NCBI GenBank assembly: GCA_001179505.1
Contig: CDMY01000571.1
Location: forward strand, 186,001 to 250,000
Reading direction: 5' to 3'
Origin: Vitrella brassicaformis CCMP3155
Lineage: Eukaryota; Protista; Chromerida
Length of the DNA: 64,000 nucleotides
Shown here: positions 22,364 through 43,750 of the stretch, in pieces
How the letters are laid out: every line of letters begins with the position of its first letter
Numbering within the stretch: the first letter of the stretch is position 1
Translations under genes and position numbers: made by a program
The notes under the pieces: model-generated
The model's input: only the letters and a program-made list of their open reading frames with translations
The model's database searches: none
What the model was told of the DNA's origin: nothing

Positions 22364-24074
22364 ATGGCCTCTGGCACTGCGCAAGGCCAGCAGTCTGTTG
22401 ACTGTCTGCGGCCAATACCGACCAGACAGTTGAGTGAGGGCATCGTCCGTCGGACCTTCACCGATCCGCAGCAAGTGGCGCAGCTCATACGCGATGGCGC
22501 TGACCCCAATGCTGAGCCCTGCCCGTGGGTGCGGGGTGCGATTGCTGCGCTGTCGTATCGGCTGCTCGCTCTCGCCGTCGACAACCTCAGCGACGGCACC
22601 CTGCATACTATCCAGGTGGACGACAGCCACGGTCGTCTGCGGCATCTCACACTACCTCGGTGGCCGTCTGCTGAGCTGGAGGCGGCTATCATCAACGCTC
22701 TCATCGACGGAGGCGCCCACGTCAATCCGCCGGCCCACGTGAACAGGCCCATCAGGGTGGCTGTCGAATGTGCCAATGAGAACGCTGTGAGGGTTTTATT
22801 GGCACGCGGTGCTGCGGTGCGCCGCCTTCAAAGCCCGTTCTTGATCATGGAGCTGCCCACGTCCACCATCTTCGACGGAGTCGGCCATCAGGTGTCCCTC
22901 GGCTATGAGCAGCGGCTGCTGTCGATCTACCGCCGGCTCATCCAGCACGACCCCACACTCGCAACCAAACAAATTGGGGGCGGTCAAACTCTGATCCAGA
23001 AGGCGGCGTGGAGCGAGCGAGGCCACTATTCGCAGGCCTTCATCGATTCGTATCTCGACCTGCTGGTGGACAAGGGGGCCAGTCTGACGGCAGTGAATGG
23101 GTCTGGATGGACGGCTCTGCACTCGGCGATAGAGTGCGGCTCTCCGTGTGTGACTGACTACCTCTGCCGCCATGTGGCAGCAGCGGACATCGACAGAGAG
23201 ACGACAGGCGGGGGTACCCCAGCGAGACGCCCCTGGTTGTGGCCGCCCGCAGAATCTATCGATCGCTTGAGCTCTCGCAAGACGTCACCGTGTCGCAGGA
23301 CGACGGGGACCGAGCCACCAGCAAGATTCCCCTTTACGAGGCGACCATCCGCAGCTTGCTGAGAATCGGAGCGGACATCGGCCGCATCCCCACAGACACA
23401 GAGGAAGACACGGCTGCCGCCAGCTGGTGCTGACCCAGTGCACGACAGTGCTCAACACGGACATCCACACTGGGGCGATGGCGGCCCTCAACGCCGCCCT
23501 CGCCCCTCAGCGGTCGCTGGCTGCCCTGATGACCCACTTGCTGCCGCTCGTTGATCACAATGACGGCGAAGACCCTGCCCCCTCCCCCCTCTCATGCGGC
23601 CCACACGAGGCAGAGGCAATCGGCTGGCGCATCGCCGCCATGTGCTTCGACCAACACGCCGCCAACGAGACCATCACTGCCAAGATCGGCATCCGCAACA
23701 GCGACATGGCCCGCCGTGTGTGTGCGGCCGTCGACCGCTCCGTCAAGTCGGCGCTGTATGCGAGCAGCAACAGGGAGGTGGTGGGCGGGACGGCCAATGT
23801 GGGCGGCGTGACGGTGCGGGTGCCGCTGCAGTGCTTCGCCATTAGGGCCGACAGCCGCCCACACCAGGTGGTCCACACACGGGGCCGTGTGGGTGTGCGT
23901 GAGGTGGTGCAGAGGGCCCGGCTGGACGAGGCGGCCCGACACGGCATAGAGGAGGGGGCCATCAACAAGGGCTTCAACGAGCATTTGGGTAATGCCGACT
24001 GTCAGTTTGGTGGGTGGCAGCAGCTGGGCCGCATCGACGAGCGGGGGCAGTGGGTGACACTCGGCATCGACTGA
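22364..24074 (+). pseudogene. Ankyrin-repeat family copy 1 (ANK1), intronless CDS with two frameshifts (about 23210 and 23410)
   Basis: Ankyrin motifs (RPIRVAVECANENAVRVLLARGA; GWTALHSAIECGSPCVTDYL); colinear with the 38870-40644 copy only if the frame is shifted twice. Confidence 0.75.
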
Positions 24075-24554
24075 GAGGGAGGGAGAGAGGGATGCATGGA
24101 GAGGTGCGTCAGTCATGTGTGCGTGGACTGTTTGGTGTCTGACAATTTTGGCATGTTGAATCGGCCTGGGTGTGTGGTGGACTCGTTTCATGAATTGACC
24201 ATCCTGACGTGGCGCATAAAGCAAATGGACAGGTACGCAATGCATCACATTACGATAGTCCATAGAATCCATAGCCAGGCAGACAGGTTATTGTCGATTC
24301 AACCTTACGTGTCCCCAGCGCAATGCATGCACTACACATAAACACTTCAATGGAACACTTCTATCCATCCATCCACCCATCCACCCTCATGACATCCCCT
24401 CTTGCTTCGCAATCAGCTCCGCGTCGTCCCCCACTGGCACAGTATGTGGGGGCGACAGGATGGGGGCGTCTCACCGATAGGGTGTCAGCCTGGCAGCCTG
24501 AGCGAATTCTGATTTTGTGATCCAGTTTCTGCCATCCATTCCGATCCCCCCAGG

Positions 24555-25095
24555 ATGCAGTCGTTCATTGCGGTATCCCTCTGTATCGCATTGGCGCTCC
24601 CCGTGCTGTCAGTGAATGCCACAGGCCTCGAGCTCCTCAACCATTGCAACAAGGCCATTGCCAACCGCGTTGCCCGACACGCACACGCTCTCGCGGCCGG
24701 CAAGGCGGCCCACGCCATTGACAAGGATGCCAGCGCCCAGCCATGTGCGTACGCGATAGACACAAAGACAGACCTTGCAATGGTGCACGACGTATCATGT
24801 TCTTTGTTCGTCTCCTGCAGCCGAGTGCTGGCACGTCGAGGCCCACGCCACCATCCGCGAGCACGTTTCGGACTGCCCGCTCCCAAAAGTGTGTGTGCTG
24901 CGCCCCGAGAAGCGCCAAGAGGGAGCTGGGCTCGGCAAGCCTCACAAGATGAGCCACAAGGGCGCGTGCGTGTCAGTGGAGGAGGCGGTCAAGCGCTGCG
25001 GCGGCAGACACAAGATCGAGGATGAGGACCTTGATAGCAACCCACTCAACGGGCAGTTCTGCACCGAGGAATCCACCACGAGCGCCAAGCTGTAG
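24555..25095 (+). CDS. Secreted six-Cys protein A (2 exons; intron 24745-24820)
   Basis: Signal peptide MQSFIAVSLCIALALPVLSVNA; exon 2 has C...CP...VCVL...GAC...C...GQFC; ends SAKL*. Confidence 0.75.
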
Positions 25096-25465
25096 CGAGG
25101 GTTGAGCAGCTTTCAATCATGCACATGCATGGACGCATGGACAAGGGAAGGAAGGACGGTCAAGAGCTCTGTGTGCGTGCATGATGAGTGTCCTCCCTGT
25201 TGTACGCACCTTTTACAAACGAACAGTAACACCAGGCACCTCAAAACTGGCTGAAGCGTCTTCTTCGTTGCACAACTGGATTCTTAATGATTGAGACATG
25301 AGACATGAGACATCACATCAATTCAATGAATCGTCAATGCCCACTGCATCGACCAGCGCCAGCAAAGGTGAGCGTTTGCAAAGGTCTGCGTGAAATATAG
25401 AATAATGCACGAAGCGGTGAACACCGCTCTGTCTTTCATCCCCTCGCTCTCGCCACGGAAAAGTG

Positions 25466-25495
25466 TGGGTGACACTCGGCATCAACTGAGGGAGG
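25466..25495 (+). repeat. Short remnant of the ANK-family 3' end
   Basis: tgggtgacactcggcatcaactgag matches 40621-40645 (WVTLGIN*). Confidence 0.65.
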
Positions 25496-26085
25496 GAGGT
25501 GTGGTGTGGTCAGTGTGTGGGAGGAGGCCATTTTAAGCTGCTGAGTGGTTCCTTGTGGCAGCAGAGAGGGAGGGGAGAGGCGGACTTTGAGTGAGTGTGG
25601 ATTGCGAATTTCGTGAATGCGGTTGTGCAGGAGTGCGCAGCAGACAGGCAGGCACCTTGCCACACACGGATGTGCGCAGGGCTGGGCTGTGTGTGCAGAG
25701 AGGGAGGGAGGGAGGGGGCGTGCACTGCGCATGTGCCTCTCTCTCTCTCTCTCTGTGTGTGTGTTTGTGTGTGTGTGTGTTTCTGTCTGTCTGTCTGTCT
25801 GTCTGTTGGAATAGGCAGGCAGGACTCCGCTTATGGATCCATCCATCCATCCGTCCACCGTCCAAGATTCCCAATCGAACGAGCAGGCAAAATCTGCACA
25901 GACGCGTAAAAAACCCTCGTCGCTGGCCCGCTCAGCTCGCTACGCGCCCACTTCATTCCTCAGACTCTCTCTCTCTCTCTCTCTCTCTCCATCCATCCAT
26001 CAACAGCCAGCCACAGAGGGCAAATTGTCATAGGGCTGGCTGCTGAATACCCGCCTCTCTCTCGGCCCGTCGGCCGACCGATCAC

Positions 26086-27085
26086 TCAGAGGAGTGACTC
26101 TCCGACCTTCTCCTTGAGCAGGTTGGTGCCGAAGAGGAGCTCCTGCACGATCATGCCGGTGATGGCGATCATCGCCAGGCGGCCGTTCTTGAGCTCCTTC
26201 AGCTGCAGCTTCTCGTAGTCCTCCTCGTCCTCGGGAATGAACCGAGCACCGAAGCCCAGATCGCCCGGCGCGCTGACAACCACACACACACACACACACA
26301 CACACAGAGCAATCGATTCCCGAAAGGTGCCCAATGGGGGCGGCCATTGATGTGCCGTTCATTGTGGGCTCGTGTGCGCACTTCTCGAGGGATTGCCTGC
26401 CGGGCCCCAGCTCGATGGCCACGACGGCCGCCAGGATCTGCAGCAGCGCCTCGGGCCGCTCTTGCCACACCTTCACCACCTGCACACACACACACACACA
26501 CACACACCACCGCACACACACCACCGCACACTGATCCACCCATCAGTGAGGGGTGTGACGGATAATGACGGACGCACCTGCTTGAGCGGCAGGTCCTCTG
26601 AAAGGAACAGGGGGTCCGGCAGCCGCAGTGGCGTCTGCTGGATGATGTACCCCAGCGCCGCAAGCATCGCAAGACGACCTGCAACACCACAGTCACCACA
26701 ATCAGCGGCACACCCCCACTCCCCACTCCACTCACTCACCGTGCTTCAGCTCAATCGCCCTGTACTTGTAGAGGTTCTGCTCCTTCCCCAGGTTCAGAGG
26801 GTCGAACACGAAAGGGATCTCCACAGACACGCCAACGAGATCCTCCACAGCCATCTGTGGCGTTTGCCGCGCTCGCAGAGCAGGCTGCCGAGAGGCAGCC
26901 GGCGTCCTGAGAGGCGCGGTGGGCACGAACGCGGCCGTTTCATCGCCTGCGTGACATTTGGTTGCCAAGCATCGAAGCAACCAGAGAATCGGATCAATGA
27001 ATGAGTGTTTCTGTTGCCATTCTCTCTCTACCGTACCGTAGGCGGCTGCGATGAGCAGGAGCGAGGCGACGGCGAAGCACTTCAT
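26086..27085 (-). CDS. Plastid light-harvesting complex (LHC/FCP-type) protein with bipartite leader, about 5 exons
   Basis: FDPLNL, RAIELKH|[26 protein letters not shown]; signal peptide [16 protein letters not shown] then AAFVP and a basic transit peptide. Confidence 0.96.
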
Positions 27086-27311
27086 GATCTTCTTGCTCTC
27101 GGCGAGGGAAGCAGCGGCAGTGCTCGCAGCTTGATTCGGTGCTCTAAAATCGGCGTGAAACTTCATTGATTGCTCGTGAGCTCGCGCTGCGTTCTCCATC
27201 TCGTAGACAGCGCAGCGTCACCACAAGACGATAGCGAAGCGGTTGATTTGCTTGATTGATTCATTCATTCATTCATCCGTTCACTGACTGATCCACCCAT
27301 CCCGTCCAGCC

Positions 27312-28632
27312 ATGCCGCCTCCCTCCTCGACACGCGTGGTGCCGCTCCCCTCTCCTCATGTGGTGCTCGGTGAGCAGCCGATCATCTGTCTGAATGAATC
27401 AGTGAGTGTCTGTCCGTCTGTCTGTCAGTGACTGGAGCCAGTGGTGGGATCGGCAATGCAGCTGCCGTCGCATTCGCCGAGAAGGGCGACACAGTGGCCA
27501 TACACTACTCAGGTGAGCTGAGGGGTGCCATCCAGAGGTCTGCCTGCATTCATCGATGCGTTTGTATTTCCCTTCTTGCAGGCAGTCAGGAAAAGGCTAA
27601 GCTGACGCTCGATGCTGTCGTGAGGGCCGGTGGGAGCGGGGCGATCTTCCAGGCCGACCTCTCGCGCGTCAGTGAAGTGCGCCGCCTATATGACGAGGTC
27701 AGATGGCCTCTCTGCACAGCCGAATGAGTGATTGGCGCCATCACTCCCTCTCCCTCTCCCCCTCCCTCTGTGTGTGTGTAGGTGTTCGCGCGGTTCGGTC
27801 GCCTCGACGTCGTGTTTGTACGAGCATCCCGACACACGACCATCCCGACACACACCACACCCACACCCATGCGTTCTCCTTGCAGAACAACTCGGGCACT
27901 CTTGGCTTCGGGCCGATTCAGGACACACCGGAAAAGGTCTATGACATGATGATGGACGTCAACGTCAAGGGTCAGCAAGCAGCCAGCCCACGCCTGATAT
28001 TGTGATATTGATTGTGATTGTGTGTGTGTGTAGGTACATTCTTCTCGATGCAGGAGGCCATCGAGCGCATGGGTCACGGCGGGGTGATAATCAACAACAG
28101 CTCGGTACTTGGCCAGCACCCGCTGGCCAACCAGGCGTGTTACTGTGCAACCAAGGCGGCCGTCGTAGGCACACAAATATGCCATTTGTCAGGCCGACCA
28201 CTGCTGCCCTCCGTGTTTGTTTGTGTTTGGCAGAACATGCTCACGAAGTGCGCCGCGAAGGAGGCGGGAGACAAGGGCATCAGGGTGAATGCCGTCGCAC
28301 CGGTGAGTGAGAAGTGCACACACACCAAGGTGCCGGATGGTCAGCCTAGTGTGTGTGTGTGTGTGTGTGTGTGTAGGGACCTGTGCTGCCTGGTGAGTGA
28401 GAAGCAGACACACACACGGAGGGGGGAGAGAAAGCGGGCGATGCTCTTTCTGTGTGTGGTGTGTGCAGGCATGTTCCCTGAAGTCATGCGCTGCCAGATG
28501 GAGGCCATATCGCCGTTCAAGAGGATCGGCGAGGCGAGAGAGGTCGCAGCCCTCTGTGTGGCCCTCGCCAGCGAAGGCATGGGCTGGGTGTCGGGGCAGG
28601 TCATCAGTGTCGACGGGGCGGCTTTCTGCTGA
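27312..28632 (+). CDS. Classical short-chain dehydrogenase/reductase (FabG-like), multi-exon
   Basis: VTGASGGIG, QADLS, GRLDV, NNSG, NSSV, YCATK, GIRVNAVAP, GQVISVDG. Confidence 0.93.
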
Positions 28633-29322
28633 CTGACTGACTGACTGACTGGCCATATCGTCTGTGTGTGGCTTCTTCCTCTGGCAGCGTGTTGGTTCGG
28701 GTGAGAGAGAGAGAGTGGTCTGTCTGTCTGTCTGTTTGTCTGTCTGTGTGGTGTTGATATGTTTGGTGCACAGCACGCTGCTGCGAGTGGGTGTCTCCCA
28801 TTGTAGCTGACAGGGTGGGTGAGTGGCTCAGTCAGCAATAATTAATTAGCTGGATGGACCTGCCCTCTGCTCTGTGTGGGTATTTTTCCATCAATCATGA
28901 GCTGCAATAATGAGTGCACCTGAATGAAACGACCAGCCAGACACGAACGAGCATAATCATCGGATTCACTTGTGGCTGGCACACGCGAAAATGTCGAGTC
29001 GGCACTCCTCAAGCCAAGTCATGCAAGACTGCAAGATTTAGATAACACTTGATAAACATCCAGCACGCACCTAGACCAGATAAACGGACACACCAACACC
29101 ATCAGCAGCACCAAGGAGTCCGACACACGACTGACGCAGATCTCGCATACCGAAGCTGAAACGAGAGAACAGCAGGTGCGTCCCGATCCTGGCCGCAATT
29201 TGGCCCCCACCCTGTCTCAGAGCTTCCCCTGCCTGCCTGAGCAACAGCCGCCCACGCAGCCGCGTGTGGAAGGTTTTCCGTCGATCCCAAGGTTGATCCC
29301 CTCCCGGTTGTGCCAACCAGCC

Positions 29323-30218
29323 ATGATCCGCCTGTTGCTTCTCGCCGTCTGTCTCGGCGCCGTCTCCTCTCAGCAGACGAGCGGTGAGCTAGCCTCTACC
29401 TGTGTGTGTGAAAGTTTGTGTGGCGCCACTCACTGGTCCGTTGTGCGTGTGAGCATGTAGGGGGGCTGCCGTCTCTGCCGTCTCTGCCTGAGTTGTCCGT
29501 CACCGCTGGCCATGAGCTGACCGGAACCGCCACCACGGCCACGACGGCCCTTCACAGTGTGTGGTCTGGGGCGTCCGGCGGCCAGCATCAGCTGTCGCTC
29601 GTGCAGCAGCTGTCGCTCGTGCAGCAGGAGCAGCTGCAGCACGCCAAGACCATGGTGGAGTTGGCCAATAAGGTCAGCGAGGCGGCCCACCAGCTGGCCA
29701 GCACCGCCCTGGCCACCCTCGACACCGCCCAGCAGCAGATGGATCTCATCGCCGAGGGAGAGGCCGGTGCCGCCATCGCCAAGGAAGCCGGGGAGCAGCC
29801 GGAACCTGCCTTCCTCTCAGAGGCCGGTGAGCGAGAGCGACTCAGCCACGGGAAGTTGCTGAAAAGAGCCAAAGCGAAGGCCCCAGCTGCTACGTGCGTG
29901 GTGTTGTCAGGTTCCCTCTCCGCCGTTGAGGGGCCCGACCGGAACGCGATGACGTGCCGCGTCCAGCGGAAAAACCGAGAAAAAGGGGGCCACCTCCAAG
30001 TGATTGGCTGCCCAGAGAAGGATCGCGTGTGCGTCCTCGACAGCAAGGACCCAGAGGACGGGCCAGCCGGCGCCAACGGCCACTGCGTCGACCGGGACCT
30101 CTACAAGCTCCACTGGGGGTGCAGCCACAACCACTCGATGCAGGACAAAAAGGGGACCTTCCCACACAAGATCCAAGAACTTCAGTCGGGCAAGTACTGC
30201 CGAGTACTGCGCGGCTGA
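29323..30218 (+). CDS. Secreted six-Cys protein B (2 exons; intron 29384-29460)
   Basis: Signal peptide MIRLLLLAVCLGAVSS; long pro-like region ending GKLLKR; C...GCP..RVCVL...GHC...WGC...GKYC. Confidence 0.78.
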
Positions 30219-30480
30219 GTCGTTGACAGTTCCGATGAATCCCGAGAGAGAGAGAGAGAGAGAGGAGAGGGAGGCGGGGAGAGAGAGGGGGGCAATGCAG
30301 CGGACGAAAGCATGTACATGTTGAAGCGGTGATCGGCCGACCACACACAGACACATAGATCCATTCATCGGTCGGTCAAAACACACACGCCCCACACACG
30401 CTGGGACGCAGTTGCGAATTATCCACCTTTGATTATCCATTCTTCCGCCAGCCATCCCTCGGTCCATCAAGACACAACAC

Positions 30481-32865
30481 TCAAGTCTTGCCACCGCCAC
30501 CGCCCCCCATCAGTCCGCCCAGCGTCATCGGGATGGTGAATGGGAGCGACGACTGCGACCGGAGCTTCTGCCGCTTCTCGGTGATCTGCTGCGCCTCCTC
30601 CCTGCACACACACACACACACACACACAGACAGGTGGATACGGCGGTTAATCTGCGTGTTAGTTAGGTATGGCGTACTGGGGGAAGTGCAGCAGAGTCAG
30701 CAGCACGGGCACCAGACTCTCGTGCTCGGCGCCCCTGAATGAATGACCGATCGAACGATCCACACACACAGAGACAGACAGGCCGCATGACATGACGCCC
30801 CACCGCCCCACCGCCCCAACGAGCGATAGACCCACCCGGGCAAATCGGTCTCCAGGAAGCTCTTGAGGATGTTCTTGAGGTACTCCATTGGCGTCTTCTG
30901 GTTGCCCAGCTCCGTCACCGACTTTGTCGCCTCCGCGGCCCGCAGCTCGTGCTTCAAATGGGCAATCTGACACACACACACACACACACAGAGAGAGAGA
31001 GGGAGAGGGAGGGAGAGGGAGGCGTTTCTCGCTCTCTCTGTGAGAGGGAGGGTGGCTGTACTTGTTTGGTGATCAGTGAGTTCTGCTGGCGCTCCTCGAC
31101 GAGTGACGACTCCAGCTGCCGCACCCGCTGCCGCAGCTTGTGGACGTCATCCCACGCCGTCTGCACACACACACAGACAGAGGGAGAGAGGGAGAGGGGC
31201 ATTTGCGTGTGTGTGTGTGTGTGTGTGGCCCGCTTCCAGGTTACCGCAGTGCCTATCACACTTCCCTCATAGTGTGACCCCGCCCGCCGCCAGCCCCCGC
31301 CGAGTGTGGGTGAGGAGCGGAACAGCGACGACGCCTCGTCCATCTCGTCCTCCATCTCTCCCAGCCCCAGCCCCACTGCCACGCCCTCGCTGTCTGCAGG
31401 GTGGTGGTGGTGGTGCTCGTGATCGCCGCCTACAGGCAGACACAGACACGGACACACAGGAAGGGAAGATCTCTTTCTGCCCCTCCCCCCCTCTCTCTCT
31501 CTGTGTGTGTGTGTGTGGGTACCCTGCTGCTGCTGCTGCTGCTGGTGGTGTGTGGCGAGAGGCGGCAGTTGTGCTGCTGGTGGTGCTGGTGACGACGGTG
31601 GGGGCTGGACAGTGTTGGTGGCCGACTCTAGTTTCTGCGCCAGCTCTGCGGCGCGAGTCGACTCGATCTTCAGCTCGCCTTGCAACTGACGAGACAGAGA
31701 CACAGATAGAGATGGGAGTGGGTGGGAGGGCTGTGGGTGGAGCGGCATGGGTGACCTGGTGGATGCGCTCCAGCTGCTGCTGGACGGTCAGCTGCAGCTC
31801 GGCCCTCTGAACACACACACACATACACACACACGGGGAGACAGAGAGGGAGACACAGAGAGAGGTGTGTGTGTCTTAAGGGGAGGCGGCTGACGCACCT
31901 TTTCGCCCTGTTCCGCCAGCCACTTGGCCTCCGCGTCTTCCAACTCCTGCACACACACACACACGCATAAGCCCCCTTCACCACACATCCTCTGTGTCCT
32001 CTGTGTCTGTCCCTCACCTGTTTGAACCCCTCTCTCAGGGCCATCTCGCTCTGCTCCTGCCTCTTGGCGGCCTCCATCCTGAAGGTCGCCAGGGTGCCCT
32101 CCAGCTGCGACCTGATGGCAGCCTGCTCGCCGAGGGAGCGCTCGAGCTTGTTGAGCTGCTGGCCCATCTCTACTTTGCCCTGGTTGGCCTTTTGCAGCTC
32201 CTGCTTCTGCACAGAGCCACACACACACACATACACAGACAGAGAGAGAGAGAGAGAGAGATAGAGAGAGGGAATGGGAGGCTCTCTGGCCCTGTGTGTG
32301 TGGCCTTTCGGTGGGTGGGGGAAGGGCCACTGCCTACCAGAGTGTTGAGCTGCGACGTCAGCGTCTTCTCCTGCTCCTCTTTGCCCGTGAGCTGCTCCAG
32401 ATAAGAGGCCGAGTTCTTCAAAGCCGTGTTGGCCTGCCATCCCATGCACAGACATCCACACACACACACACACACACACATGAGGGAGGGAGGGAGGGGG
32501 GAGGGGTGTTGAGGTGACCTTTATGCGGTAGAGGTCGTACTCCTTCTTAGTGTGCTCGAGCTCGGCCTTCATGGCCTCCAAAGCGGCGTCACGCTCACTC
32601 AGCCGGGCTCGCAGAGAGACCGCCTTAGCACCATAACACAACACACACACACTCTCTCTCTCTCTGTGTGTGTGTGTGTTTTACCTCGTCGGCGTGTCCC
32701 GGCTGCAGAGGTGGTGGGAGGGGCAACTCGGGCGGCAGGGCGGACACCGGCCACCACCACACCCACGGCAGCACCTCCGCCTCAGTACCTTTCTCACCGC
32801 CCTCTACCTCCACCTTGTCCTTCTCGCTCTCCTCAGCTGCACACACACACGCACACACACACACA

Positions 32866-32896
<31 letters not shown>

Positions 32897-33282
32897 CGCG
32901 CGCGTACCACCCTCAGCAGCACCATCAGCAGAAGCACCAGCGAGAGGTGCCTGTGACTGTGGCGACTGTTGTGGTGGTGGTGGTGGCGGTGGCGGTATGC
33001 AGCACCAGACCTCCCCCTCGACCATGACCGTGACGGCCCTGTCCCAGCCGCCCCGCTCCTGGAAACCGTCGAAGGAGGGGGCGCTGGTGAAGTGCTGACG
33101 GAGACGGGAGCACTGCTGAGAGACCACGGAGTGCTGCTCCTGAGGTGCGCATGACACACACAGGTGGTTCTGGGCGTGTGTGTGTGTGGTTTGGTGTGTG
33201 GGTGCGTGCCTCTTTGTGTGTGAGGTCTGCCTGCAGCTCTGCGATGCGCCTGTTCTGCTCTTCCATGCGGCCATTCGCCTAA

Positions 33283-33317
<35 letters not shown>

Positions 33318-33494
33318 TTCCCACACACAAAGGCAGCTCAGCTCAGCGATGTGTGTGTGTGTGTGTGTGTGAGCTGACCTGCGAGATGAGGCCCTTGAAT
33401 TTGCTATTCTGCGAGGCGAGCTTCTCGCCGCTCTCTTCCCTCTCTCTCAGCTGCTCCTTGACGGCACTGTGCTCAGCCTGGAGCTCATCGACCT

Positions 33495-33526
<32 letters not shown>

Positions 33527-36500
33527 TGGTGTGTGGGTGGTTTGAGGGTTTCTTACTTTAGTCTGCAGTGCGGCGGTTTTCTCTTTGGCCTTCATCAGCA
33601 AAGCCGCCTTGTCGCGCTTCAACGTCGCCGTCTCAGACCTGTTGACACACACGCACACACACACACACACAGAGGGAGAGACGTGTGTGTGTGTGTGTGG
33701 ACTCGTGTGTCTGTCACTCTCTCTGTGTCTGTCTGTCTGTGTGTGTCTGTCTGTCTGTCTGTCCGTCAAGGTGGGTCACTTGAGAGCGGCGATCTGCTGC
33801 TGCTTGGCCGCTATGTCCTCGGCTGCAGCGAGCAGCCTCTCCTCCTAAACACACACACACACACACATGGTCCGTCTGATGGAGGGACGGATGGCCTCCT
33901 CTCAGCCTACCATTTCCTTGATCGGCGCGCCGTCGTCCTTCGGTGGCTGGGCAGCGGCAGCGGCACTCGCACTCGCTCTTGCCCGCAGCTCCGCCAGCTC
34001 CTCCTGAGAGCGTGTGTGTATGCAGAAGAGTGGATTGGGGGGGNNNNNNNNNNNNNNNNNNNNNNNNNNNNNNNNNNNNNNNNNNNNNNNNNNNNNNNNN
34101 NNNNNNNNNNNNNNNNNNNNNNNNNNNNNNNNNNNNNNNNNNNNNNNNNNNNNNNNNNNNNNNNNNNNNNNNNNNNNNNNNNNNNNNNNNNNNNNNNNNN
34201 NNNNNNNNNNNNNNNNNNNNNNNNNNNNNNNNNNNNNNNNNNNNNNNNNNNNNNNNNNNNNNNNNNNNNNNNNNNNNNNNNNNNNNNNNNNNNNNNNNNN
34301 NNNNNNNNNNNNNNNNNNNNNNNNNNNNNNNNNNNNNNNNNNNGGGATGGATCGGTGAGGTGAAGGGGTACCTCTTTCTCCCGCAGCTGCTGCTGCATGG
34401 CCGCGACGCTCTCCTCCTCAGCGCGTGCACCCTCCTGGGCGTCATCCGCCGCCCTGCAGACACTCACATAAGACACACACATGTCACACACAGAGTGGGA
34501 CAGAGAGAGAGGGGGGGAGAGGGGGTCTATTGACCTGTGGGCGGATTGCAGCTCCTGCGAGAGACGGTCTTTCGCCGATTTCTCGGCTGTCAGGTCGGCG
34601 CCCAGCTCGCGAAGCTGCTGCTGGGCGGAGAGGAGTGACGCTTCCATCTCGCTCAGCTGCACCCACCCAGACAAACAGACAGACAGACAGAGAGACAGAC
34701 AAAGAGACGTCTGTGGGTGTGCGTGTCCAGAGCACCATGTCTCTCTCTCTCTCTCTCTCTGGCTACTTTGTCGGCTTTGCCAGCGAGCTGCTGCTGCAAA
34801 TCCTGGATGCTCTCATCGCGAGACCGCAGAGTGGCGGAGAGCTGCTCCACCTCTCGGCGCATGTCGGCGTCGCTCTCCTCCGCGGCTCTGCACACACAGA
34901 GAGGGAGGGAGGGAGAGGGCTGCACGTGTGTGTGTGTGGGCGTTGTCGGGGGAGGTTACCTCTGTGCGGCTTCTTTGGCGGCCTGCTCGGCCGTCAGCTG
35001 TCGCTGCGCTTCAGTGAGAGCCGCCTCCCTCTCTGTCAGCGATGACTCAACCGCAGTCACCTGCACTCGACGAACACACACGCACACATACACACACAGC
35101 CCCTCCCTCTCTCTCTCTCTGTGTGGGTGGGTGGGTGGGTGGTAGCAGTGGGGGCTGTGAGCCTGCCTGCTGCTGCAGGGCGTCCCTGTCGCTCTGTGTG
35201 TGGGCGAGCTCCTCTCTCAGTTGCTGGAGGTCGGCTTGCAGCGCTGCGGTCTCGTGTTTGTGCTGCTGGTGCTGTGTGTCTGTCTGCTGCTGCTGTTGCT
35301 GCTGGGCAGTGGCGAGCTGTCGCTCCAGGGCGTCTTTGGCCTGACAGAGAGCCAGGGAGAGTGAGAGTGAGAGTGAGAGGGCACACATCGATCTGTGTGC
35401 TTGCGCAGAGGCGCAGACCTCTTGCAGAGTGTCGAGCTGGGCGTGCAGCGCGCCTTTGGCTTCTTCTGCCGCACTCAACTGACACCGCACGGCCTCCATC
35501 TGCTTGAGGTGCTCTTGTGACTCCTGTGTGTGGTGCTGCTCGGCCTGACACACACACAGAGAGAGAGAAGGCGCATACACATACACACACACACACACAC
35601 AGAGGCTCTTTCTCACCATCCCACCCACCCTACCTCTTGCAGGCTTGCAATCCGGCTCTCTGCGGCCTTTAGCTGACACACACACACACACACACACAGA
35701 GAGAGAGAGGGGGGTGTCATGCTTGTGTGTGTTACTGCCGGGCACTCACCTTGTCGGCCAGCATCGCTCTCTCCTGCCCCTCTGTCGAGAGCCCCTCCTG
35801 GGCCGCCGAGAGCTCGGCGTCTCTCTCTTCCCGCTGCTGCTGCAGCTGCTGCACGGTCTGCTCGGCTTTGGCGAGCTGCTCAGCGCCCTGGTCCAACTGC
35901 AACTGCAGGGCCCTCAACTGACCGTCGACACACACATCCACACACACACACACACACACAGAGGCGCACCTTGCCCTCGGACTCTTCGCGAGCAGCCGCG
36001 AGCTCGGCGTCCCTCTCGGCCAGCTGTGCGGCGAGCTGGGCTCGGCTGCTCTCCTCCTGAGTGATGCGCTGCTGCAGCTGGTCTATGTTGGCTTCGAGAC
36101 CACTCATGGCCGACTCAAGCTGACACACACACAGAGAGAGGGAGGGAGGGAGGGAGGGAGAGAGAGAGGGTGGGGGGTTTGCTCTCTCTCTCTCTCTCTC
36201 TCGGTGTGTGTGTGTGTGTGTGACGCACCTCAGCTGACCGCGCCGCCCTGTCGGCCATCTGTTCGACCTGCGTCTGGAAGGTGTTGAGCTTGGCGAGCAG
36301 CGCGTCTTTCTCCTCGGTCCATCTGGCACTCTCCTGTCGCAACTGCTGCACCGGCAAACACACAGAGGGAGAGGGAGGGCCGTGTGGGGTGTGCGGCCTT
36401 GTGGGTGGGGGCGTACCATCTCGTGCCGCGTGTCGAGGTCCTCCTTCTGGTCGACAATCCGCTGCCTAACCTCCTCAAGCGCCCTTTCCCCCAATCCCGC

Positions 36501-38401
36501 CCCCCCACAAACACACAGACACCAATTCTCACGCCCACACCGCACTCCACACACGACTCGGCTCACCTCTCTGTCTTCTCCTTCTCACTCCTCAGCTCGC
36601 CGAGCTCCCTCTCCAGCCCGGCAGCGGCCTCCCTCAGCCGCTCACTCTCGCCCTCCGCCCGTCTGAGGCGGATCTCCTGCTCACCTGCGGTGGCCTTTTT
36701 CTCGCTGAGGGCGGCCTGCAGGTCGCTCTCGAGGCGGTAAGCCCGGTCCTGCCACTTCTCGCACTCCTTGATGGCGACATTCTTCTCCTGATTGTTGCAC
36801 ATACACACACACAGAGAGAGAGAGAGAGCAAATGAGGGAGGGAGGGTGGGAGAGGGAGAGGGAGGGGGTGGGCTGCTGACTTTGGTGGACTCGATTTGTT
36901 GTTTCTGGATCTGCCGCGAGAGCTTTTCGTTTTCGCTCTGCAGCAGCTGCACTTGACGGGGGAGATCCAACTCGGCCTGATGGACACACAGACACACCAC
37001 ACACCATGGCCCCTCTCTCTCTCAGTGTGTGTGTGTGTCCGTCCTGACCCGCTGCGCATGCTGCTGCTGCTGCTGCTGCTCCTTCTGCTGCTGCTGCTGC
37101 GATGATGATGAGTGTGCGGCGGCGTGGGTGGGCGAGTCCCCTCCCCCAGAAGCACCGGAGGATGCCGATCGCGACTCGTACTGGTCAGAGGGGGAGCTCC
37201 TGGCCTTGTCGAAACGGTGCTGCTGCTGCGGCTGCTGTTGCTGCTGCTGCTCTAAGCGGGCAATCTTGCTCCTGTTGACAGCCAGACAGAGAGGGAGGGG
37301 AGAAGAGAGAGAGAGAGAGAGATGTGGTTTGTGTGTGGGAGTGGCGGGGGCGTTTGGCTCACTTGAGCGACTGGTTCTCGACCTCCACCAGGGACTTTTC
37401 GGTTCGGACCTTCCGAAGCTCTGACTCAGTGGCACCTGCACACACACACTCACAGAGAGAGAGAGAGAGAGATGGAGACCCATCACATGGACGCCTCTAT
37501 CGCCTCCTCACTCTCGCCCTCTTGCTGCTGCTGCTGCTGCTGCTCTGTCAGCTGATCTCTCTCCCTCTCCAGCTCGGCCACCCTGGCCGTCTCCGCCGCG
37601 AGCTGCTCCCGGAGTGTCCGCACCTCATCGGTGAGCTGGGAGAGGCTCTCGGTGCGGCTGCTCAGCATGCTCCGCAGCTCGGCGTTCTCCTCCTCTCGCA
37701 CACTGCCGCCGCTGCTGCTCGGCTGGTGGGACTTGAGGGCCTCGTTTTCTCGCTCCAGCTCTGACGGATGGGTCGATTGCCGCACACAGACACACACAGG
37801 GAGAGAGAGAGGGAGAGAGGGTGGTGTGGGGGATGGCGCATTTGACACACTTGTGTGTGTGTGTGTGTGTGTGCTTGTTGTTACTTTCCATGCGTTCCTT
37901 GGCCTGCTTGAACGACTGGAAGCTCTTCCGCGCAAAGGCCTCCAGCTTCTCGCGGGACACTGACACACACACACAACCACACACAACCACACACAGACCG
38001 CTTCCCCTCTCTCTCTCTCTCTCCTACTCTGTGTAATGTGATCCGCAGCAGCAACAGCCGCGGCCCCTGGCTGCTTTGTGGCTGTGGATGAGGGAGAGGG
38101 GGGACGGGGTTGGGAGGGAGATGCCTGTGGCATCGATGGCGAGTTCTTCTCTGAGCCGGGCTGTGAGCCTGAGCCGGTGAGCCTCGCCTGTGCCGCCTGA
38201 GCCTCCTCGCCCACCTTCTCCAGAGCACTGTGGCACACCCACACACACAAGGGCCGTCTCGTGAAGAGATCATCTCTCCCTGTGTGTGTGTGTGTGTGCG
38301 CGCGGATCTGTCTGTGTGTCGTGTTTGCCATCTGCTCACCTCTGTGCTGCGCTCTGGAGCTTTTCGGTCAGGTTTCTCAGCCCGCCGCCGAGGTTCTTCA
38401 T
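30481..38401 (-). CDS. GRIP-domain golgin (long coiled coil), many exons, spans a gap
   Basis: Q/E/A-rich heptad exons throughout; C-terminal MEYLKNILKSFLETDLPG|AEHESLVPVLLTLLHFPQ|EEAQQI fits the GRIP consensus; start MKNLGGGLRNLTEK. Confidence 0.85.
34044..34343. other. Assembly gap (300 N) inside a golgin intron
   Basis: G tracts on both sides; flanking exons join in phase (LREKE|EELAELR). Confidence 1.
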
Positions 38402-38565
38402 CTCTGCAGCTCTCCTTTCTGGTGTGTGGCCAACCAACACGCTCACAGGCTCGGTCGCTCAACAAACACTTTACTCTCTGGTACTACTTGTTTGGTTGCA
38501 GCTGCGAAAGCTCCGCTACCCACCATCCACACGCACATATTTTCCTCCCATTTCTGAGCAGGCTG

Positions 38566-38607
38566 TAGGGTTTATGACCCTACGCCCTCAGAAACCCTAC
38601 ACCCTAA
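38566..38607. promoter_or_regulatory. Telomere-like box cluster between golgin (-) and ANK2 (+)
   Basis: TAGGGTTTA...ACCCTA...AAACCCTAC-ACCCTAA. Confidence 0.55.
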
Positions 38608-38869
38608 CGTGAATGCCGCCACTGTTAACCGACAAGCAATCAAAATGGAGGTATGACGACTTCAAGGAGGCAGAGAGGGCCGAGGACTGTGTGTTGTACG
38701 CTGATAAGGTGAGAATGGGTCAGGAGAGAAAGAGAAGGAGGGGGCAATGAGAATCATTATGAGATGCCTGTTTGTTGTCTGTTTCTCACGATGCATGCAG
38801 CTTGGAGTGATGCCGTGAGGTGACCAATGGCCTCCAGCTGCCGTGTGGTGTGAGCAGGCCGCGTCAGTG

Positions 38870-40644
38870 ATGGCCTCTGGCAGTGCGGAAGGCCAGCAGT
38901 CTGTTGACTGTCTGCGGCTCGAGGACATCGACATTAGACACAGGGATCATCATGGCACCGGCCATGCGACCCAACAGTCAATATATAGCCAACAGTTGAC
39001 TGAGGGCATCATTCGTCGGGCCTTCGCTGATCCACGGCAGGTGACGGACCTCGTAAGGAATGGCGCTGACCCGGACAGTGAGCCCCGGCTGCGACGGCGC
39101 GGCAGCGGCGCTAATGGGCGGGCGTATCGGCTGCTCTGTCTCGCCATTGACAATTGGAGTGACAACACCATGCCCATTCAGGCAGCAGATAGCACTGGTC
39201 GTTTATCGCCCGTCGTGTTGCCCATGTGGTCGTCGCCTGAGCTGGAGGCGGCCATCTTGAATGCCCTCATCGACGGAGGCGCCGACATGAACGAGCCGAC
39301 CTTTTGGGACAGCCAACCCATCAGGATGGCAATCCGTGGGGGCAATGAGAGCGCAATGAGGGTCTTGTTGGCGCGCGGCGCTGCGGTGCGCCCCCCTCGT
39401 GGCCTTCCCTTTCGCCTCGTCATGGAGCTGCCCAGGCCCATCCCCGACCGAGTCGGCCATCAAGTGCCCATGGCGTATGAGCAGCGGCTGTTGTCGGTAT
39501 ACCGACGCCTCATCCAGCACGACGCCACACTTGCAACCGAACAAGACGCGGGCGGCTACAACCTCATCCACAAGGCCGCCAGCGACGAGCTAGGCCGCTA
39601 TTCGCAGGCCTTCATCGATTCGTATCTGGACCTGCTGGTGGACAACGGGGCCAATGTGACGGCGGTGGATGCCGCTGATTGGACGCCTTTGGAATTGGCG
39701 GCAGATGCCGGTTCTCCCTGTGTGATCGACTACCTTGGCCGCCATGCACCTTCTTCGGACATCAACAGAGGGACACCCGGCGACCCCAATGAGACGCCAC
39801 TATACTTCGCTGCTGACCGCCTTGATGCATCGATTGCACTCTCGCAGGACCCTGTTGACATAGGGCAGCACCTCAGGGACCGAGCCACCAGCAAGATTCC
39901 CCTTTACGAAGCCAGCGTCCGCAGCTTGCTGCGAAGCGGGGCGGACGTCGGCCAGATGCCCACAGACACCGAGCTGGACCGCCGTCGTCGCGACCTGGTG
40001 CTGCCCCAGTGCACGGCAGTCCTCAACACCGACGTGCACACGGGGGCGATGGCGGCCTCAACCCCGCCCTTGCCCCTCAGCGGTCGCTAGCTGTCCTGCT
40101 GACCCACCTGCTGCCGCTCGTCGACCACAGCGACGGCGAGGACCCCGCCCCCTCCCCCCTCTCATGCGGCCCACACGAGGCAGAGGCCATCGGCTGGCGG
40201 ATCGCCGCCATGTGCTTCGACCAAGACGCCGCCAACGAGGCCATCGCTGCCAACATCGGCATCCGGCACAGCGACATGGCCCGCCGTGTGTGCGCGGCCG
40301 TCGAGCACTTCATCACGTCGGCGCTGTATGCGAGCAGCAACAGGGAGGTGGTGGGTGGGACGGCCAATGTGGGCGGCGTGACGGTGCGGGTGCCGCTGCA
40401 GTGCTTCGCCATCATGGCCGACAGCCGCCCACACCAGGTGGTCCACACACGGGGCCGTGTGGGTGTGCGTGAGGTGGTGCAGAGGGCCCGGCTGGACGAG
40501 GCGGCCCGACACGGCATAGAGGAGGGGGCCATCAACAAGGGCTTCAACGACCATTTGGGTAATGCCGACTGTCAGTTTGGTGGGTGGCAGCAGCTGGGCC
40601 GCATCGACGAGGGGGGGCAGTGGGTGACACTCGGCATCAACTGA
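38870..40644 (+). pseudogene. Ankyrin-repeat family copy 2 (ANK2), intronless, one 1-nt deletion near 40057
   Basis: Ankyrin motifs (QPIRMAIRGGNESAMRVLLARGA; DWTPLELAADAGSPCVIDYL); gcggcctca versus gcggccctca in copy 1 breaks the frame before the conserved C-terminal domain. Confidence 0.75.
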
Positions 40645-41092
40645 GACAGAGGGAGGGAGGGTTGGGCCGCTGAGTGTTGCCGTGTGCTGTTGGCAGCAGC
40701 CGAGGGGCCCGGGAGGGAGGCTCGGAGGGAGGGGTGCATCATCCCATGTGTGTGTGGCCTGCTTAATGTTGCCCGTGAGAACGCCCGTGAGAGGGAGAGG
40801 GGTGGACTGACCGATGATGTGTCACTGTGTGTGTCGACAATTGTGCCATGCATGTTGGGCTGACTGATGTATGGATCTGATGGAGAGTCACGTGCATTAA
40901 ATGACTGATCCATACAGACAGACACATAGAGTAAAGCTGAGACACGGACACAAATGAGAGTTCGCCTGTCGCGTGTCAAAGGGAAAGGTCATCGACGCAG
41001 AATTGTAGCAACGGTCTGTCACACGACCTTAAACCATCGCCCATCCCTCTCTTCCTCTCTTCCTCTCTCCCTCTGTCTCTGTGTGTGTGCAG

Positions 41093-41746
41093 ACGGCGTG
41101 GGATGACATCCACAAGCTGCGGCAGCGGGTGCGGCAGCTGGAGTCGTCACTCGTCGAGGAGCGCCAGCAGAACTCACTGATCACCAAACAAGTACGCCCA
41201 CCCTCTCTGCCAGAGAGAGCGAGAAACGCCTCCCTCTCCCTCCCTCTCCCTCTCCCTCTGTGTGTGTGTGTCAGATTGCCCATTTGAAGAACGAGCTGCG
41301 GGCCGCGGAGGCGACAAAGTCGGTGACGGAGCTGGGCAATCAGAAGGCGCCGATGGAGTACCTCAAAAACATCCTCAAGAGCTTCCTGGAGACCGATTTG
41401 CCCGGGTGGGTCAATCGCTGGGGCGTTGGGGCGATTAGTCGGGCGTCATGTCATGCGGCCTGTCTGTCTGTTTCTGCGTGTGTGGATCGTTCGATCGGTC
41501 ATTCTTTCAGGGGCGCCGAGCACGAGAGTCTGGTGCCCGTGCTGCTGACTCTGCTGCACTTCCCCCAGTACGACACACCTAACCAACACGCCGATCAACC
41601 GCCGTATCCACCTCTCTCTGTGTGTGTGTGTATGTGTGTGCAGGGAGGAGGCGCAGCAGATCACCGAGAAGCGGCAGAAGCTGAGGTCGCAGTCGTCGCT
41701 GCCCTTCACCATCCCGATGACGCTGGGCGGTGGTGGCAAGACTTGA
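41093..41746 (+). pseudogene. Orphan copy of the last four golgin exons (GRIP domain), frame and splice sites intact
   Basis: TAWDDIHKLRQRV...|IAHLKNEL...MEYLKNILKSFL...|AEHESLVPVLLTLLHFPQ|EEAQQI...GGGKT*; no upstream exon or start found. Confidence 0.7.
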
Positions 41747-42045
41747 GTCTTGTCTGTCTCCTGATGGCTGGAGGGATGGCTGGCGGAAGAATGGCTAATG
41801 AAGAATGGATAATTCGCAAGTTCCCAACATGCATGCCTTCGGGGCGTTTTGACCAATGAACGGATCTATGTGTCTGTGTGTGGTGGGCGGCTTATGGAGA
41901 TGTTTGTGTGAGAGTGTTCATTGTGTGGTCGGCCGATCACCGCTTCAACATGTATATGCCCTCGTCCGCTGCACCGCTGCACTGCCCCTCTCTCTCTCTC
42001 TCAGTGTGTGTGTAGGTGTGTGTGTATGATGCCAGGGTCACAGGG

Positions 42046-42996
42046 TCACAGACAGTAATTGCCCGTGTCGGTGTTGTGGATCTTGTGAAAGGTCCCGCAC
42101 CCCCATTGGAAGTAGCAGTGCCCATGGTGGAGCTTGCCATTCACGTCAAAGACGCACACGCGATCCTTCTTTGGGCAGCCACTCACCTTGTAGCTTTTTT
42201 TCTTGTCTTTCCACTCGATGCGGCACTCCTCCGCTTTCGGGTCGCAGAAGTAGCCGCCCTCGGCCATGTAGATCTGGTGTTCGTCCTGCTTGGAGGGCTC
42301 CTGGCTGCACTTGTACCCCTTGCCCTCGTAGAATTCCGGGCCGAGGCAGCGGCCTTGCCGCTGTGTATCCAGGACGCACACCCAGCTGTTTATCATGTGT
42401 GGGCATTTCTTCACCACGAGGTCGCCTTCTTCGTCTGTCTTGATGGAGCACTTATTCGGCAAGGGCCCCTCAACGGCGGAGAGGAAACCTGACAACACCA
42501 CGCACGTAGCAGCTGGGGCCTTCGCTTTGGCTCTTTTCAGCAACTTCCCGTCGCTGAGTCGCTCTCGCTCACCGGCCTCTGAGAGGAAGGCAGGCTCCGG
42601 CTGCTCCGCGGCTTCTTTGGCGATGGCATTGACACTGTGGAGGGCCGTCGTGGCCGTGGTGGCGGTTCCGGTCAGCTCATGGCCGGCGGCGACGGACAAC
42701 TCAGATGGCAGGTGAGACGGCAGCCCCCCTGCACGCACAACGGACCAGTGGCACCACACGAACTTCCACACAGCTGTCTTTGTGTCTATCGCGTACGCAC
42801 CTGGCTGGGCGCTGCCAGTGGCGTCCTTGTCAATGGCGTGGGCCGCCTCGCCGGCCGCGAGAGCGTGTGCCTGTCGGGCAACGCGGTTGGCAATGGCCTT
42901 GTTGCGATGGTTGAGGAGCTCGAGGCCTGTGGCGTTCACGGACAGCACGGGGAGCGCCAATGCGATACAGAGGGATACCGCAATGAACGACTGCAT
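42046..42996 (-). CDS. Secreted protein C: chimera of A-type exon 1 and B-type exon 2, with two tandem six-Cys domains (intron 42729-42800)
   Basis: Exon 1 is near-identical to 24555-24744; exon 2 pro-region is near-identical to gene B; two C...CP...VCV...GxC...C...GxxC units follow. Confidence 0.8.
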   Translation of the reverse strand: MQSFIAVSLCIALALPVLSVNATGLELLNHRNKAIANRVARQAHALAAGEAAHAIDKDATGSAQPGAYAIDTKTAVWKFVWCHWSVVRAGGLPSHLPSELSVAAGHELTGTATTATTALHSVNAIAKEAAEQPEPAFLSEAGERERLSDGKLLKRAKAKAPAATCVVLSGFLSAVEGPLPNKCSIKTDEEGDLVVKKCPHMINSWVCVLDTQRQGRCLGPEFYEGKGYKCSQEPSKQDEHQIYMAEGGYFCDPKAEECRIEWKDKKKSYKVSGCPKKDRVCVFDVNGKLHHGHCYFQWGCGTFHKIHNTDTGNYCL

Positions 42997-43300
42997 CCTG
43001 GGGGGATCAGCGCGAATGGATGGCAGAAACTGGATCACAAAATCAGGATTCGCTGACGCCGCTATCGGTGAGACGCCACGCCCCCTGTGGCCCCCAGGGT
43101 GCTGTTCATGCATTGTGCACTGAGGAAGCCATGTGAACTGAGCGTTTGCTGACTGACGGAGCGGATCGGATGGGGAATCAACGAAAAACCTTACACACGC
43201 GGCTAGACAGCTTCTCAGACAGGGGAAGGTCGAATGTAGTTGCGGCCAGGATCGGGAGGCGCCCGGGCGGTCAGTTTTCTCGTTTCAGCTTCGTTATGCG

Positions 43301-43488
43301 ACGGCGAGGACCCCGCCCCCTCCCCCCTCTCATGCGGCCCACACGAGGCAGAGGCCATCGGCTGGCGGATCGCCGCCATGTGCTTCGACCAAGACGCCGC
43401 CAGTGAGGCCATCGCTGCCAACATCGGCATCCGGCACAGCAACGTGGCCCGGCCCGCCGTGTGTTTGCGTCCGTCGAGCACTTCATCA
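43301..43488 (+). pseudogene. Internal fragment of the ANK-family C-terminal domain
   Basis: GEDPAPSPLSCGPHEAEAIGWRIAAMCFDQDAA... near-identical to 40134-40280. Confidence 0.85.
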
Positions 43489-43750
43489 GGAGTGAATGTA
43501 TTGTTTGTTAAACCCTCGCCCGCGGAATATCCGCCAACGACATTTCGGTGTTCCGTTTCCGTCAACATCTTGCCAAGAAGGGGGTAGCCAAGAACCAACC
43601 ATCAGGTTGGCTCGGTTTGGTCGCCGAAAGGTGTCCATCGTCGATATGTATCAACATGACGGGATGACACACGTGTCGCTCACACGCCACCGAAAAGGAC
43701 ACTGACGGATGGCCCATCGATTCATTCCTCTCGCCCCTCTCGCCCCTCAA

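Follow-up and report, generated by a model that had tools for sequence, protein, structure and literature searches.

Cassette exons of three expressed Vitrella brassicaformis genes with a six-cysteine domain, and the wider family of modular, putatively secreted proteins to which they probably belong

Secreted, cysteine (Cys)-rich protein families that diversify fast behind conserved leaders are known from animal venoms, from amphibian skin, and from plant reproduction and defence. Among photosynthetic organisms, chromerids are the nearest relatives of Apicomplexa, and Vitrella is a free-living, coral-associated alga. The s48/45 (6-Cys) domain of Apicomplexa is a beta-sandwich of about 120 residues. 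In the conotoxin genes, each successive exon is reported to have two- to three-fold higher non-synonymous (Dn) and synonymous (Ds) divergence, and introns stay conserved among the members of one superfamily (PMC3862624). RaCI, a small protein to which we return below, consists of two loops tied by three disulfides (PMC8548845). Here, we analyze three genes, named A, B and C, in a window of 64,000 nucleotides (nt) of Vitrella brassicaformis CCMP3155 (contig CDMY01000571.1, positions 186,001 to 250,000, forward strand); the window is this whole stretch, and coordinates are counted from its first letter unless another contig is given. Exact-sequence look-up of two proteins encoded in the window likewise points to this strain. 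An initial annotation of the window had placed the genes at 24555-25095 (A), 29323-30218 (B) and 42046-42996 (C) and had read them as precursors with a conserved leader and a hypervariable domain with six Cys.

All three genes lie at these places and are spliced and expressed, as is evident from spliced contigs of A and B and a transcript of C. Taken as a whole, the explanation that we favor, and hold to be fairly probable though well short of certain, is that A, B and C belong, as three expressed paralogues, to a larger, Vitrella-specific superfamily of secreted modular proteins. The genes would be assembled from exchangeable exons parted by short phase-1 introns, namely a signal-peptide exon, in most members a glutamine/alanine (Q/A)-rich helical spacer exon, and a terminal exon with a small disulfide-rich cassette. 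In A, B and C this cassette is a module with six Cys, a CP..VCV core and a predicted beta-hairpin ladder, and in most other members a module with an EGF-like C-C-C-CxC-C pattern. New combinations would arise through recombination within introns, and the cassette exon diverges several-fold faster than the neighboring exons and introns. Most likely, the cassettes would act as stable extracellular binding modules (of a ligand, inhibitor or antimicrobial type) with surface loops that are either free to change or driven to do so. The gene models with their splicing and expression, membership of the family, the lack of relatives outside it and the pattern of divergence are established by observation. 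Secretion is suggested by the N-terminal hydrophobic leaders, which look like cleavable signal peptides, with neither an anchor nor a retention signal present; the fold of the cassette is taken from structure models, and the proposed binding role, which may lie in defence, competition, recognition or wall structure, is read from the architecture.

The cassette itself is the first element to consider. An alignment of the four domains bears out the framework described in the initial annotation, C1-x(n)-C2P-x(3-6)-VC3V-x(n)-GxC4-x(n)-C5-x(n)-Gx[YF]C6. The domain measures roughly 65-90 residues and occurs in four copies over A, B and C; the positions C, CP, VCV, GxC, C and G..C are invariant, and the loops vary greatly in sequence and length. 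When each copy was scored with a profile hidden Markov model (HMM) built from the others, the B copy (33 bits) and the second copy of C (C2; 21 bits) were both far above 1000 composition-matched shuffles, the first copy of C (C1) was above all 1000 shuffles, and the A copy ranked third of 1001. Membership of the A copy in the domain rests partly on its shared exon structure and on the exon 1 that it has in common with C. Against the 72.7 Mb, 1064-contig genome, the HMM of all four copies found four matches only, which are A, B, C1 and C2. A fifth, marginal match at 19867-20136 (E 0.066) was dismissed for lack of the Cys framework, and a Cys-rich array in the same window (51600-54760) has no similarity to the cassette. 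Note that most introns between 25500 and 38500 are full of (CA)n, (GA)n and (TG)n runs, which translate as CVCV, HTHT and LSLS, and that these simple-repeat introns yield many false Cys-rich open frames.

The HMM gave no credible relatives among 1.84 billion representative proteins: apart from A and C, the hits of this exhaustive profile search were three spurious repeat proteins only, i.e., a plant NLR with leucine-rich repeats, a copia gag array and, from a metagenome, a repeat with a CPPFDRVC motif. P0005, a metagenomic, precursor-like repeat protein of 441 amino acids with four ..LVK(K/R)ACPPFDRVCLNDS.. copies between NSN/QQ-rich spacers, reached E 2.5e-5 in a match to the CP..DRVC core of the profile, which we judged to be a short-motif coincidence raised by repetition. 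Pfam returned nothing for the cassettes at E<=10, a PDB sequence search with the domain returned noise only, and no match was obtained with the B cassette in a word-index protein search or, on its own, in a metagenome contig scan. Searches of the ESM Atlas by features and by shape likewise gave nothing usable for the domain. The six-Cys domain is thus found only at the A/B/C locus and is without detectable relatives. AlphaFold2 models, computed from the four-sequence alignment only and of moderate confidence (pLDDT 71 and 76, pTM 0.65 and 0.60), consist of successive beta-hairpins and one short helix. Their top structural matches were, for both models, the RaCI tick C5 inhibitors and the furin-like Cys-rich repeats of R-spondin and HER2, all of them weak and with partial cover (Foldseek E about 0.45-1, Z 2.6-3.4). 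We read the predicted fold as a generic disulfide-stapled hairpin ladder and not as membership of the RaCI or furin-like family; the models point to a weak resemblance in shape. The isoelectric point (pI) of the domains is 5.6-9.0.

The helical spacer exon connects gene B to a much wider set of loci. Exon 2 of B alone found 10 further places in the genome at E<1e-3 (one 87% identical, nine on other contigs), and a profile of the helical exon found 45 places at E<=0.001, roughly twenty of which have E values under 1e-10. We define the superfamily by an exon with the Q/A-rich helical pattern ..VQQQVQQAKxM..A.K...AA....ALDAI.TAEQQM.., after which come a phase-1 intron and a Cys cassette. Gene B displays all of these features, C keeps only the flanks of the exon, and A is without it. 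A fourth gene, D, is located 22 kb upstream of the window (L010, C571:162526-165816, minus strand) and combines a B-type signal and an 87% identical helical exon with a cassette of the form C-x6-C-x21-C-x12-CxC-x4-C, which follows a phase-1 intron that splits a Gly codon and is EGF-patterned, not of the six-Cys type. The intron that precedes the cassette is in phase 1 in three other members too, splitting a Gly or Asp codon. The general layout of the family is a putative signal peptide, the helical module (..VQQQVQQAKTMMVAANKMSQAA...ALDAIHTAEQQM..ITKG..) and a cassette of 40-55 residues with the EGF Cys pattern, the latter being found 70-220 nt downstream of the helix exon in at least eight of the 30 loci inspected. 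Profile-profile comparison (hhalign) of the EGF-patterned with the A/B/C cassette gave a probability of 0.8%, i.e., no relation. The annotated and transcriptome-derived proteins of the helical-exon loci are all from Vitrella; Pfam recognized no domain in six full-length family proteins (E<=10), and our literature searches yielded no description of this family, or of such a family in chromerids. The initial annotation had drawn an architectural analogy with conotoxins, defensins and plant SCR peptides, in which a conserved signal/pro part precedes a variable disulfide-rich domain, and had suggested a toxin, defence or recognition system. With one helical exon at 45 places and differing cassettes behind it, the architectural analogy is stronger than could be seen from the window.

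A few members of the wider family deviate from this layout. At L022, L021 and L023 (contigs C535 and C688), the exon with the EGF-patterned cassette is not the last one: a conserved GTACG.. donor comes after it, and then a tiny terminal exon (P0009 has ..CKPI at its end). Because the cassette is internal, conserved introns lie on both sides of the variable exon at these loci. L021 (C688:67721-70921) has an in-frame TAG in the helix exon, directly after ..AFTKG, and the annotated protein P0008 ends there; this locus may be a pseudogene or a truncated member.

Transcript data support the individual gene models. Exon 1 of gene A (24555..24744, plus strand) encodes a putative signal peptide (MQSFIAVSLCIALALPVLS...) and a short helical spacer and ends in phase 1. 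It is followed by a 76-nt, phase-1 GT..AG intron (24745..24820), the joint of which (24744->24821) is present in a spliced contig of run X1. The last exon (24821..25095), crossed unbroken by further contigs, carries one six-Cys cassette, the most divergent copy, and the stop codon. These exon models match the annotated protein CEM23801.1 (P0002), an 'unnamed protein product'. In the assembly reading, the protein has six Cys in the cassette and one more in exon 1, and a genome search found copies of this exon in A and C only. At three positions of exon 1 (24611, 24617 and 24645), contigs of runs X1 and X4 have C-type letters; the X1 contig is spliced and A-type downstream, the X4 contig is DNA and A-type upstream, and the letter change at 24645 turns Cys31 of gene A into Arg. 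The transcript contig of gene C (L005), for its part, bears A-type letters and the 5' untranslated region (UTR) of A over its positions 1-254. This exchange of letters could be due to a patch swap in the assembly, to assembler chimeras at a 35-nt identical stretch, or to a real exchange or gene conversion between the paralogues.

Gene B, also on the plus strand, starts with a putative signal peptide unlike that of A (MIRLLLLAVCLGAVSS, then QQTS) in exon 1 (29323..29383), which ends in phase 1. Run X3, which we took as RNA given its spliced joints of neighboring genes and zero depth between genes, contains the joint (29382/3->29460/1) over intron 1 (29384..29460; 77 nt, phase 1), a contig (29508-29828) of exon 2 (29461..29826), which encodes a Thr/Ala-rich linker and the Q/A-rich helical module, and the joint (29825/6->29910/1) over intron 2 (29827..29910; 84 nt, phase 1, in frame). 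The last exon (29911..30218) encodes ...SLSAVEGP, then one six-Cys cassette and the stop codon, so that spliced B has six Cys after the signal peptide. A proportion of 0.96 of the sampled words of 29300-30300 was found in X3.

Gene C, on the minus strand, comprises an exon 1 (42801..42996) with an A-type signal and spacer, 94-95% identical to A in DNA, a phase-1 intron 1 of 72 nt (42729..42800), an exon 2 (42573..42728) with the B-type linker and without the 70-residue helical core, a phase-1 intron 2 of 84 nt (42489..42572) that is the counterpart of intron 2 of B, and a last exon (42046..42488) with two tandem six-Cys cassettes and the stop codon. The JGI transcript contig L005 (1805 nt) codes for the 264-residue protein P0006 and matches the exons of C at 100% with both introns gone (270-430 = 42731-42571; 428-1273 = 42489-41644, both 100%) and the last exon unbroken, giving twelve Cys after the signal peptide. 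This contig continues into the antisense strand of the duplicated end of a gene with a GRIP domain (see below). The published model of C, CEM23813.1 (246 residues, 'unnamed protein product'), contains an extra 54-nt intron (42361-42414, minus strand) that would remove the CP..VCV core of the first cassette; the stretch is retained in L005 and P0006. The five introns of A, B and C are all in phase 1. It has to be considered whether the three genes might be non-functional, either as artefacts of annotation or assembly or as pseudogenes, the region being duplicated and rich in repeats. The segmental duplication and the assembly gap in this region, the unsupported 54-nt intron in the published model of C and the three exon-1 letters of A and C that differ between assembly and contigs fit that possibility. 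Nonetheless, the intact frames of A, B and C, the GT..AG introns confirmed by spliced contigs and the independent transcript contigs make it hardly credible, and the spliced transcripts largely refute it.

Splicing also determines how the supposed pro-region is to be understood. In the initial annotation, the pro-region of B and C ended in GKLLKR, a possible dibasic convertase site. The stretch 'GERERLSHGKLLKRAKAKAPAATCVVLS' is, however, an 84-nt GT..AG intron (B: 29827-29910; C: 42489-42572) with the in-frame translation ERERLS(H/D)GKLLKRAKAKAPAATCVVLS, and it is spliced out in contigs of both genes. GKLLKR and an extra Cys are normally removed because both sit in this intron, and a 'pro-region ending GKLLKR' falls outside the main mRNA since the intron is absent from the transcripts of B and C. 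A classical prepropeptide, cut at GKLLKR by a kexin/furin-type protease that sets free a toxin-like mature peptide, is therefore very improbable. Spliced and unspliced contigs of the B intron do occur side by side in run X3 and the intron is in frame, hence an isoform that retains it and bears the KR is possible. Yet retention would bring in an unpaired seventh Cys, gene A has no such segment, and at that position other family members have loose, irregular basic patches only (ITKKQR, and the GKKKEKK that precedes the cassette of gene D).

The relation between the three genes is that of a mosaic. Between B and C, a block comprising 29772-29936 and 42463-42627, respectively, is 97% identical, the five differences being distributed over exon 2 (three), the 84-nt intron (one) and exon 3 (one). 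Identity collapses directly after ...AVEGP, where B continues with one cassette and C with two, and a 42-nt patch around CP(E/K)KDRVCV is the sole stretch beyond this point that is still at 91%. The 3' flank of B (30267..31199) has an inverted duplicate beside C (41054-42002; 80-94% identity, with 88-94% where the 3' flanks of the two genes resume their match), and the duplicated stretch takes in the 3' end of the GRIP-domain gene that is convergent with B. The near-identity of the B and C leaders and 3' flanks, with a break after AVEGP, was thus correctly noticed in the initial annotation, but its interpretation as a conserved 'pro-region' ending in GKLLKR fails on the intronic position of that motif. 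Between A and C, a match of 271-281 nt with 94-95% identity (A 24501-24771 = C 43054-42774) spans the 5' UTR and exon 1 and reaches 27 nt into the intron. Beginning at about 42773, C matches B instead (B 29405-29560 = C 42772-42632; 83% identity, 96% in the core), over the 3' part of intron 1 and the start of exon 2. Intron 1 of C is consequently chimeric, A-type in its 5' part and B-type in its 3' part with a breakpoint near 42773, and gene C appears to join the promoter and exon 1 of A with exon 2 and the flanks of B. Because the switch from A-type to B-type falls inside an intron, we regard it as direct evidence of exon shuffling through intronic recombination. Since introns and flanks are as much alike as the leaders, the leader similarity of B and C and of A and C points to recent duplication or recombination, or to gene conversion, and not to constraint.

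Set against these similar surroundings, the cassettes are strikingly diverged. Pairwise comparison of the B, C1 and C2 cassettes gives synonymous divergence (dS) values of 0.36-0.49 and ratios of non-synonymous to synonymous divergence (dN/dS, omega) of 0.9-1.7, and dS exceeds 1 in comparisons with A. The exons, introns and flanks of B and C next to the cassette differ by 3-12%; the amino-acid identity of the cassettes is 32-49%. Four paralogues of the wider family behave in the same way: their helix exon has a pooled dS of 0.13 and dN of 0.13, their cassettes have a dS of 0.75 and dN of 0.75 (pooled omega about 1.0), and the intron before the cassette is 87-97% identical. In amino acids, the wider family shows 71-84% identity in the helix exon and 28-45% in the cassettes. 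With dS and dN at 0.75 versus 0.13, the cassette exon is about six times more diverged than its surroundings, at synonymous and non-synonymous sites alike. The hypervariable cassette beside a conserved leader that the initial annotation had described is hence found in B and C and in four other paralogues. The cassettes are more diverged than the leaders, and dN/dS is about 1 (0.9-1.7), dS being raised too. Because the Cys and the core motif persist while the overall omega is about 1, the sequences suggest an omega above 1 in the loops. The divergence pattern alone is no proof of positive selection.

These figures invite a neutral interpretation, according to which old, weakly constrained cassettes sit behind leaders homogenised by duplication or conversion, in ordinary extracellular or wall proteins and with no arms race. 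Cassette dS is raised as much as dN (omega about 1.0 pooled, and 0.9-1.7 for the A/B/C set), introns and flanks are conserved as much as leader exons, exon 1 of A and C bears signs of sequence exchange, and one member has an in-frame stop, all of which such a mosaic would accommodate. It accounts less well for the retention of the six Cys and the CP..VCV core in four out of four copies while loops change and shift in length, for the splicing and expression of the genes, and for the sharp boundary at the cassette exon that recurs in many independent paralogues. Such a recurring boundary is hard to obtain from conversion tracts alone, unless homogenisation of the cassette is selected against. 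On balance we deem this neutral account unlikely, though deserving of serious consideration. At the other end of the range, it is tentatively conceivable, by analogy, that Vitrella runs a conotoxin-style diversity generator, in which conserved exons and introns frame a specifically diversified cassette and thereby provide a secreted disulfide-rich repertoire directed at other organisms. Diversification might then proceed by selection against homogenisation, by swapping of cassettes via the phase-1 introns or by a locally raised mutation rate; the targets might be bacteria, competitors, hosts or mates, and the six-Cys domain of A, B and C might be a newly arisen fold.

Several observations weigh against the favored explanation of exon-shuffled, secreted binding modules. 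No dibasic site (KR or RR) precedes the cassette in the spliced A, B or C proteins, and the domains are not strongly cationic, unlike typical defensins. The structure models are moderate in confidence and derive from four sequences. The leaders of A and B were judged by eye, as hydrophobic with small residues at -3/-1. Contig depth is zero over 29972-30350, which covers the cassette exon and 3' end of B, in all four runs including the DNA runs; because of this, the last exon of B is backed by shared words and upstream joints only, and a filtering effect in the placement of contigs is suspected. Finally, dN/dS is near 1 with dS up as much as dN, and relaxed constraint gives the same result, as would a locally raised mutation rate, misaligned loops, or old cassettes beside homogenised flanks. 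Plastid targeting by a bipartite leader, which we considered as well, was set aside, since a disulfide-rich end domain fits it poorly.

The function of the helical exon bears on one further alternative. Roles as a pro-region, as a folding aid or as an oligomerising stalk are all conceivable for it. In the last case the proteins could be multivalent recognition or adhesion molecules, with variable Cys-rich heads on a stalk comparable to the neck of collectins, and could serve recognition between cells, between gametes or of microbes. Over the 45 genomic places, no coding part is more conserved than the helical exon, it is not set apart from the cassette by a conserved cleavage site, and EGF-patterned modules are, as is generally known, typical of apicomplexan extracellular adhesion proteins (Woo et al. 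2015, PMC4501334). Still, A and C have the cassette and lack the helical core, and neither a membrane anchor nor another adhesive domain is present. A three-copy oligomer prediction of the B helical exon scored 0.21 against a mark of 0.32, which speaks neither for nor against oligomers. We rate multivalent recognition as rather improbable.

The surroundings of the locus carry further traces of duplication. An ankyrin-like gene occurs twice in the window (22342-24074 and 38843-40644; 79-93% identity), a third fragment lies beside C (43240-43587), and another copy is located upstream of gene D (L010:2599-3033). Ankyrin-like genes thus stand upstream of A, of the C region and of D alike; the duplicated unit is probably 'ankyrin-like gene plus secreted gene'. 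A long, intron-rich coiled-coil gene with a C-terminal GRIP domain (30500-38400, minus strand) is convergent with gene B; an inverted copy of its last exons is present beside C (41029-41859, plus strand). Between B and C, the assembly has its gap, a run of N at 34044-34343. An exon on the minus strand ends in ...QQQLREKE at a GT to the right of the gap, and an acceptor ...ctcag before GAGGAGCTG/GAGGAGCTGGCG is found to the left, so the gap falls inside an intron of this unrelated GRIP-domain gene. It is 3.8 kb away from B and 7.7 kb from C, outside the A, B and C genes, their introns and the duplicated arms. The relative order and inverted orientation of B and C are the sole point that rests on the scaffold join across it.

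A lineage-specific, exon-shuffled secreted repertoire in chromerids would bear on the question of how parasites could have come by their repertoires of extracellular proteins. Exon shuffling is, moreover, seen here in a clean natural case, its recombination breakpoint still discernible within an intron, and the domain without detectable relatives is a candidate for a recently born fold. Among described systems, the apicomplexan 6-Cys (s48/45) domain is likewise alveolate, equipped with six cysteines and, as is presumed for A, B and C, extracellular, but the A/B/C domain differs from it in length and predicted fold and has no Pfam match at E<=10. RaCI, the Fu1-Fu2 repeats of R-spondin and the HER2 repeats are small disulfide-stapled beta-hairpins, as are the AlphaFold2 models. 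RaCI2 reaches a TM score of 0.71 normalised by target (rmsd 1.9 A over 49 columns), and RaCI1 and R-spondin each a Z of 3.4. The Cys framework is, however, not shared with these proteins, cover is partial and the matches are below significance, which leaves a resemblance in shape only. Most members of the wider family have the C-C-C-CxC-C pattern in common with the EGF-like domains found in extracellular proteins of alveolates, and one member is named 'EGF-like domain-containing protein' by UniRef. The A/B/C cassette, in contrast, has no CxC and a different spacing, and no Pfam EGF model matches any member.

The closest parallel is found in the conotoxins of Conus, which have a three-part precursor whose three exons correspond approximately to signal, pro/spacer and Cys-rich mature part, conserved leaders and introns next to a mature exon with much higher dN and dS, and a first intron in phase 1 (PMC3862624). 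There is no relationship in sequence or fold, so that this is analogy and not homology. Vitrella introns measure 70-100 nt compared to more than 3 kb in conotoxin genes, and the Vitrella family has no conserved dibasic site, venom apparatus or known target. Its cassettes are also larger (45-90 residues), with two in tandem in gene C. The family is a lineage-restricted, new example of a known evolutionary design.

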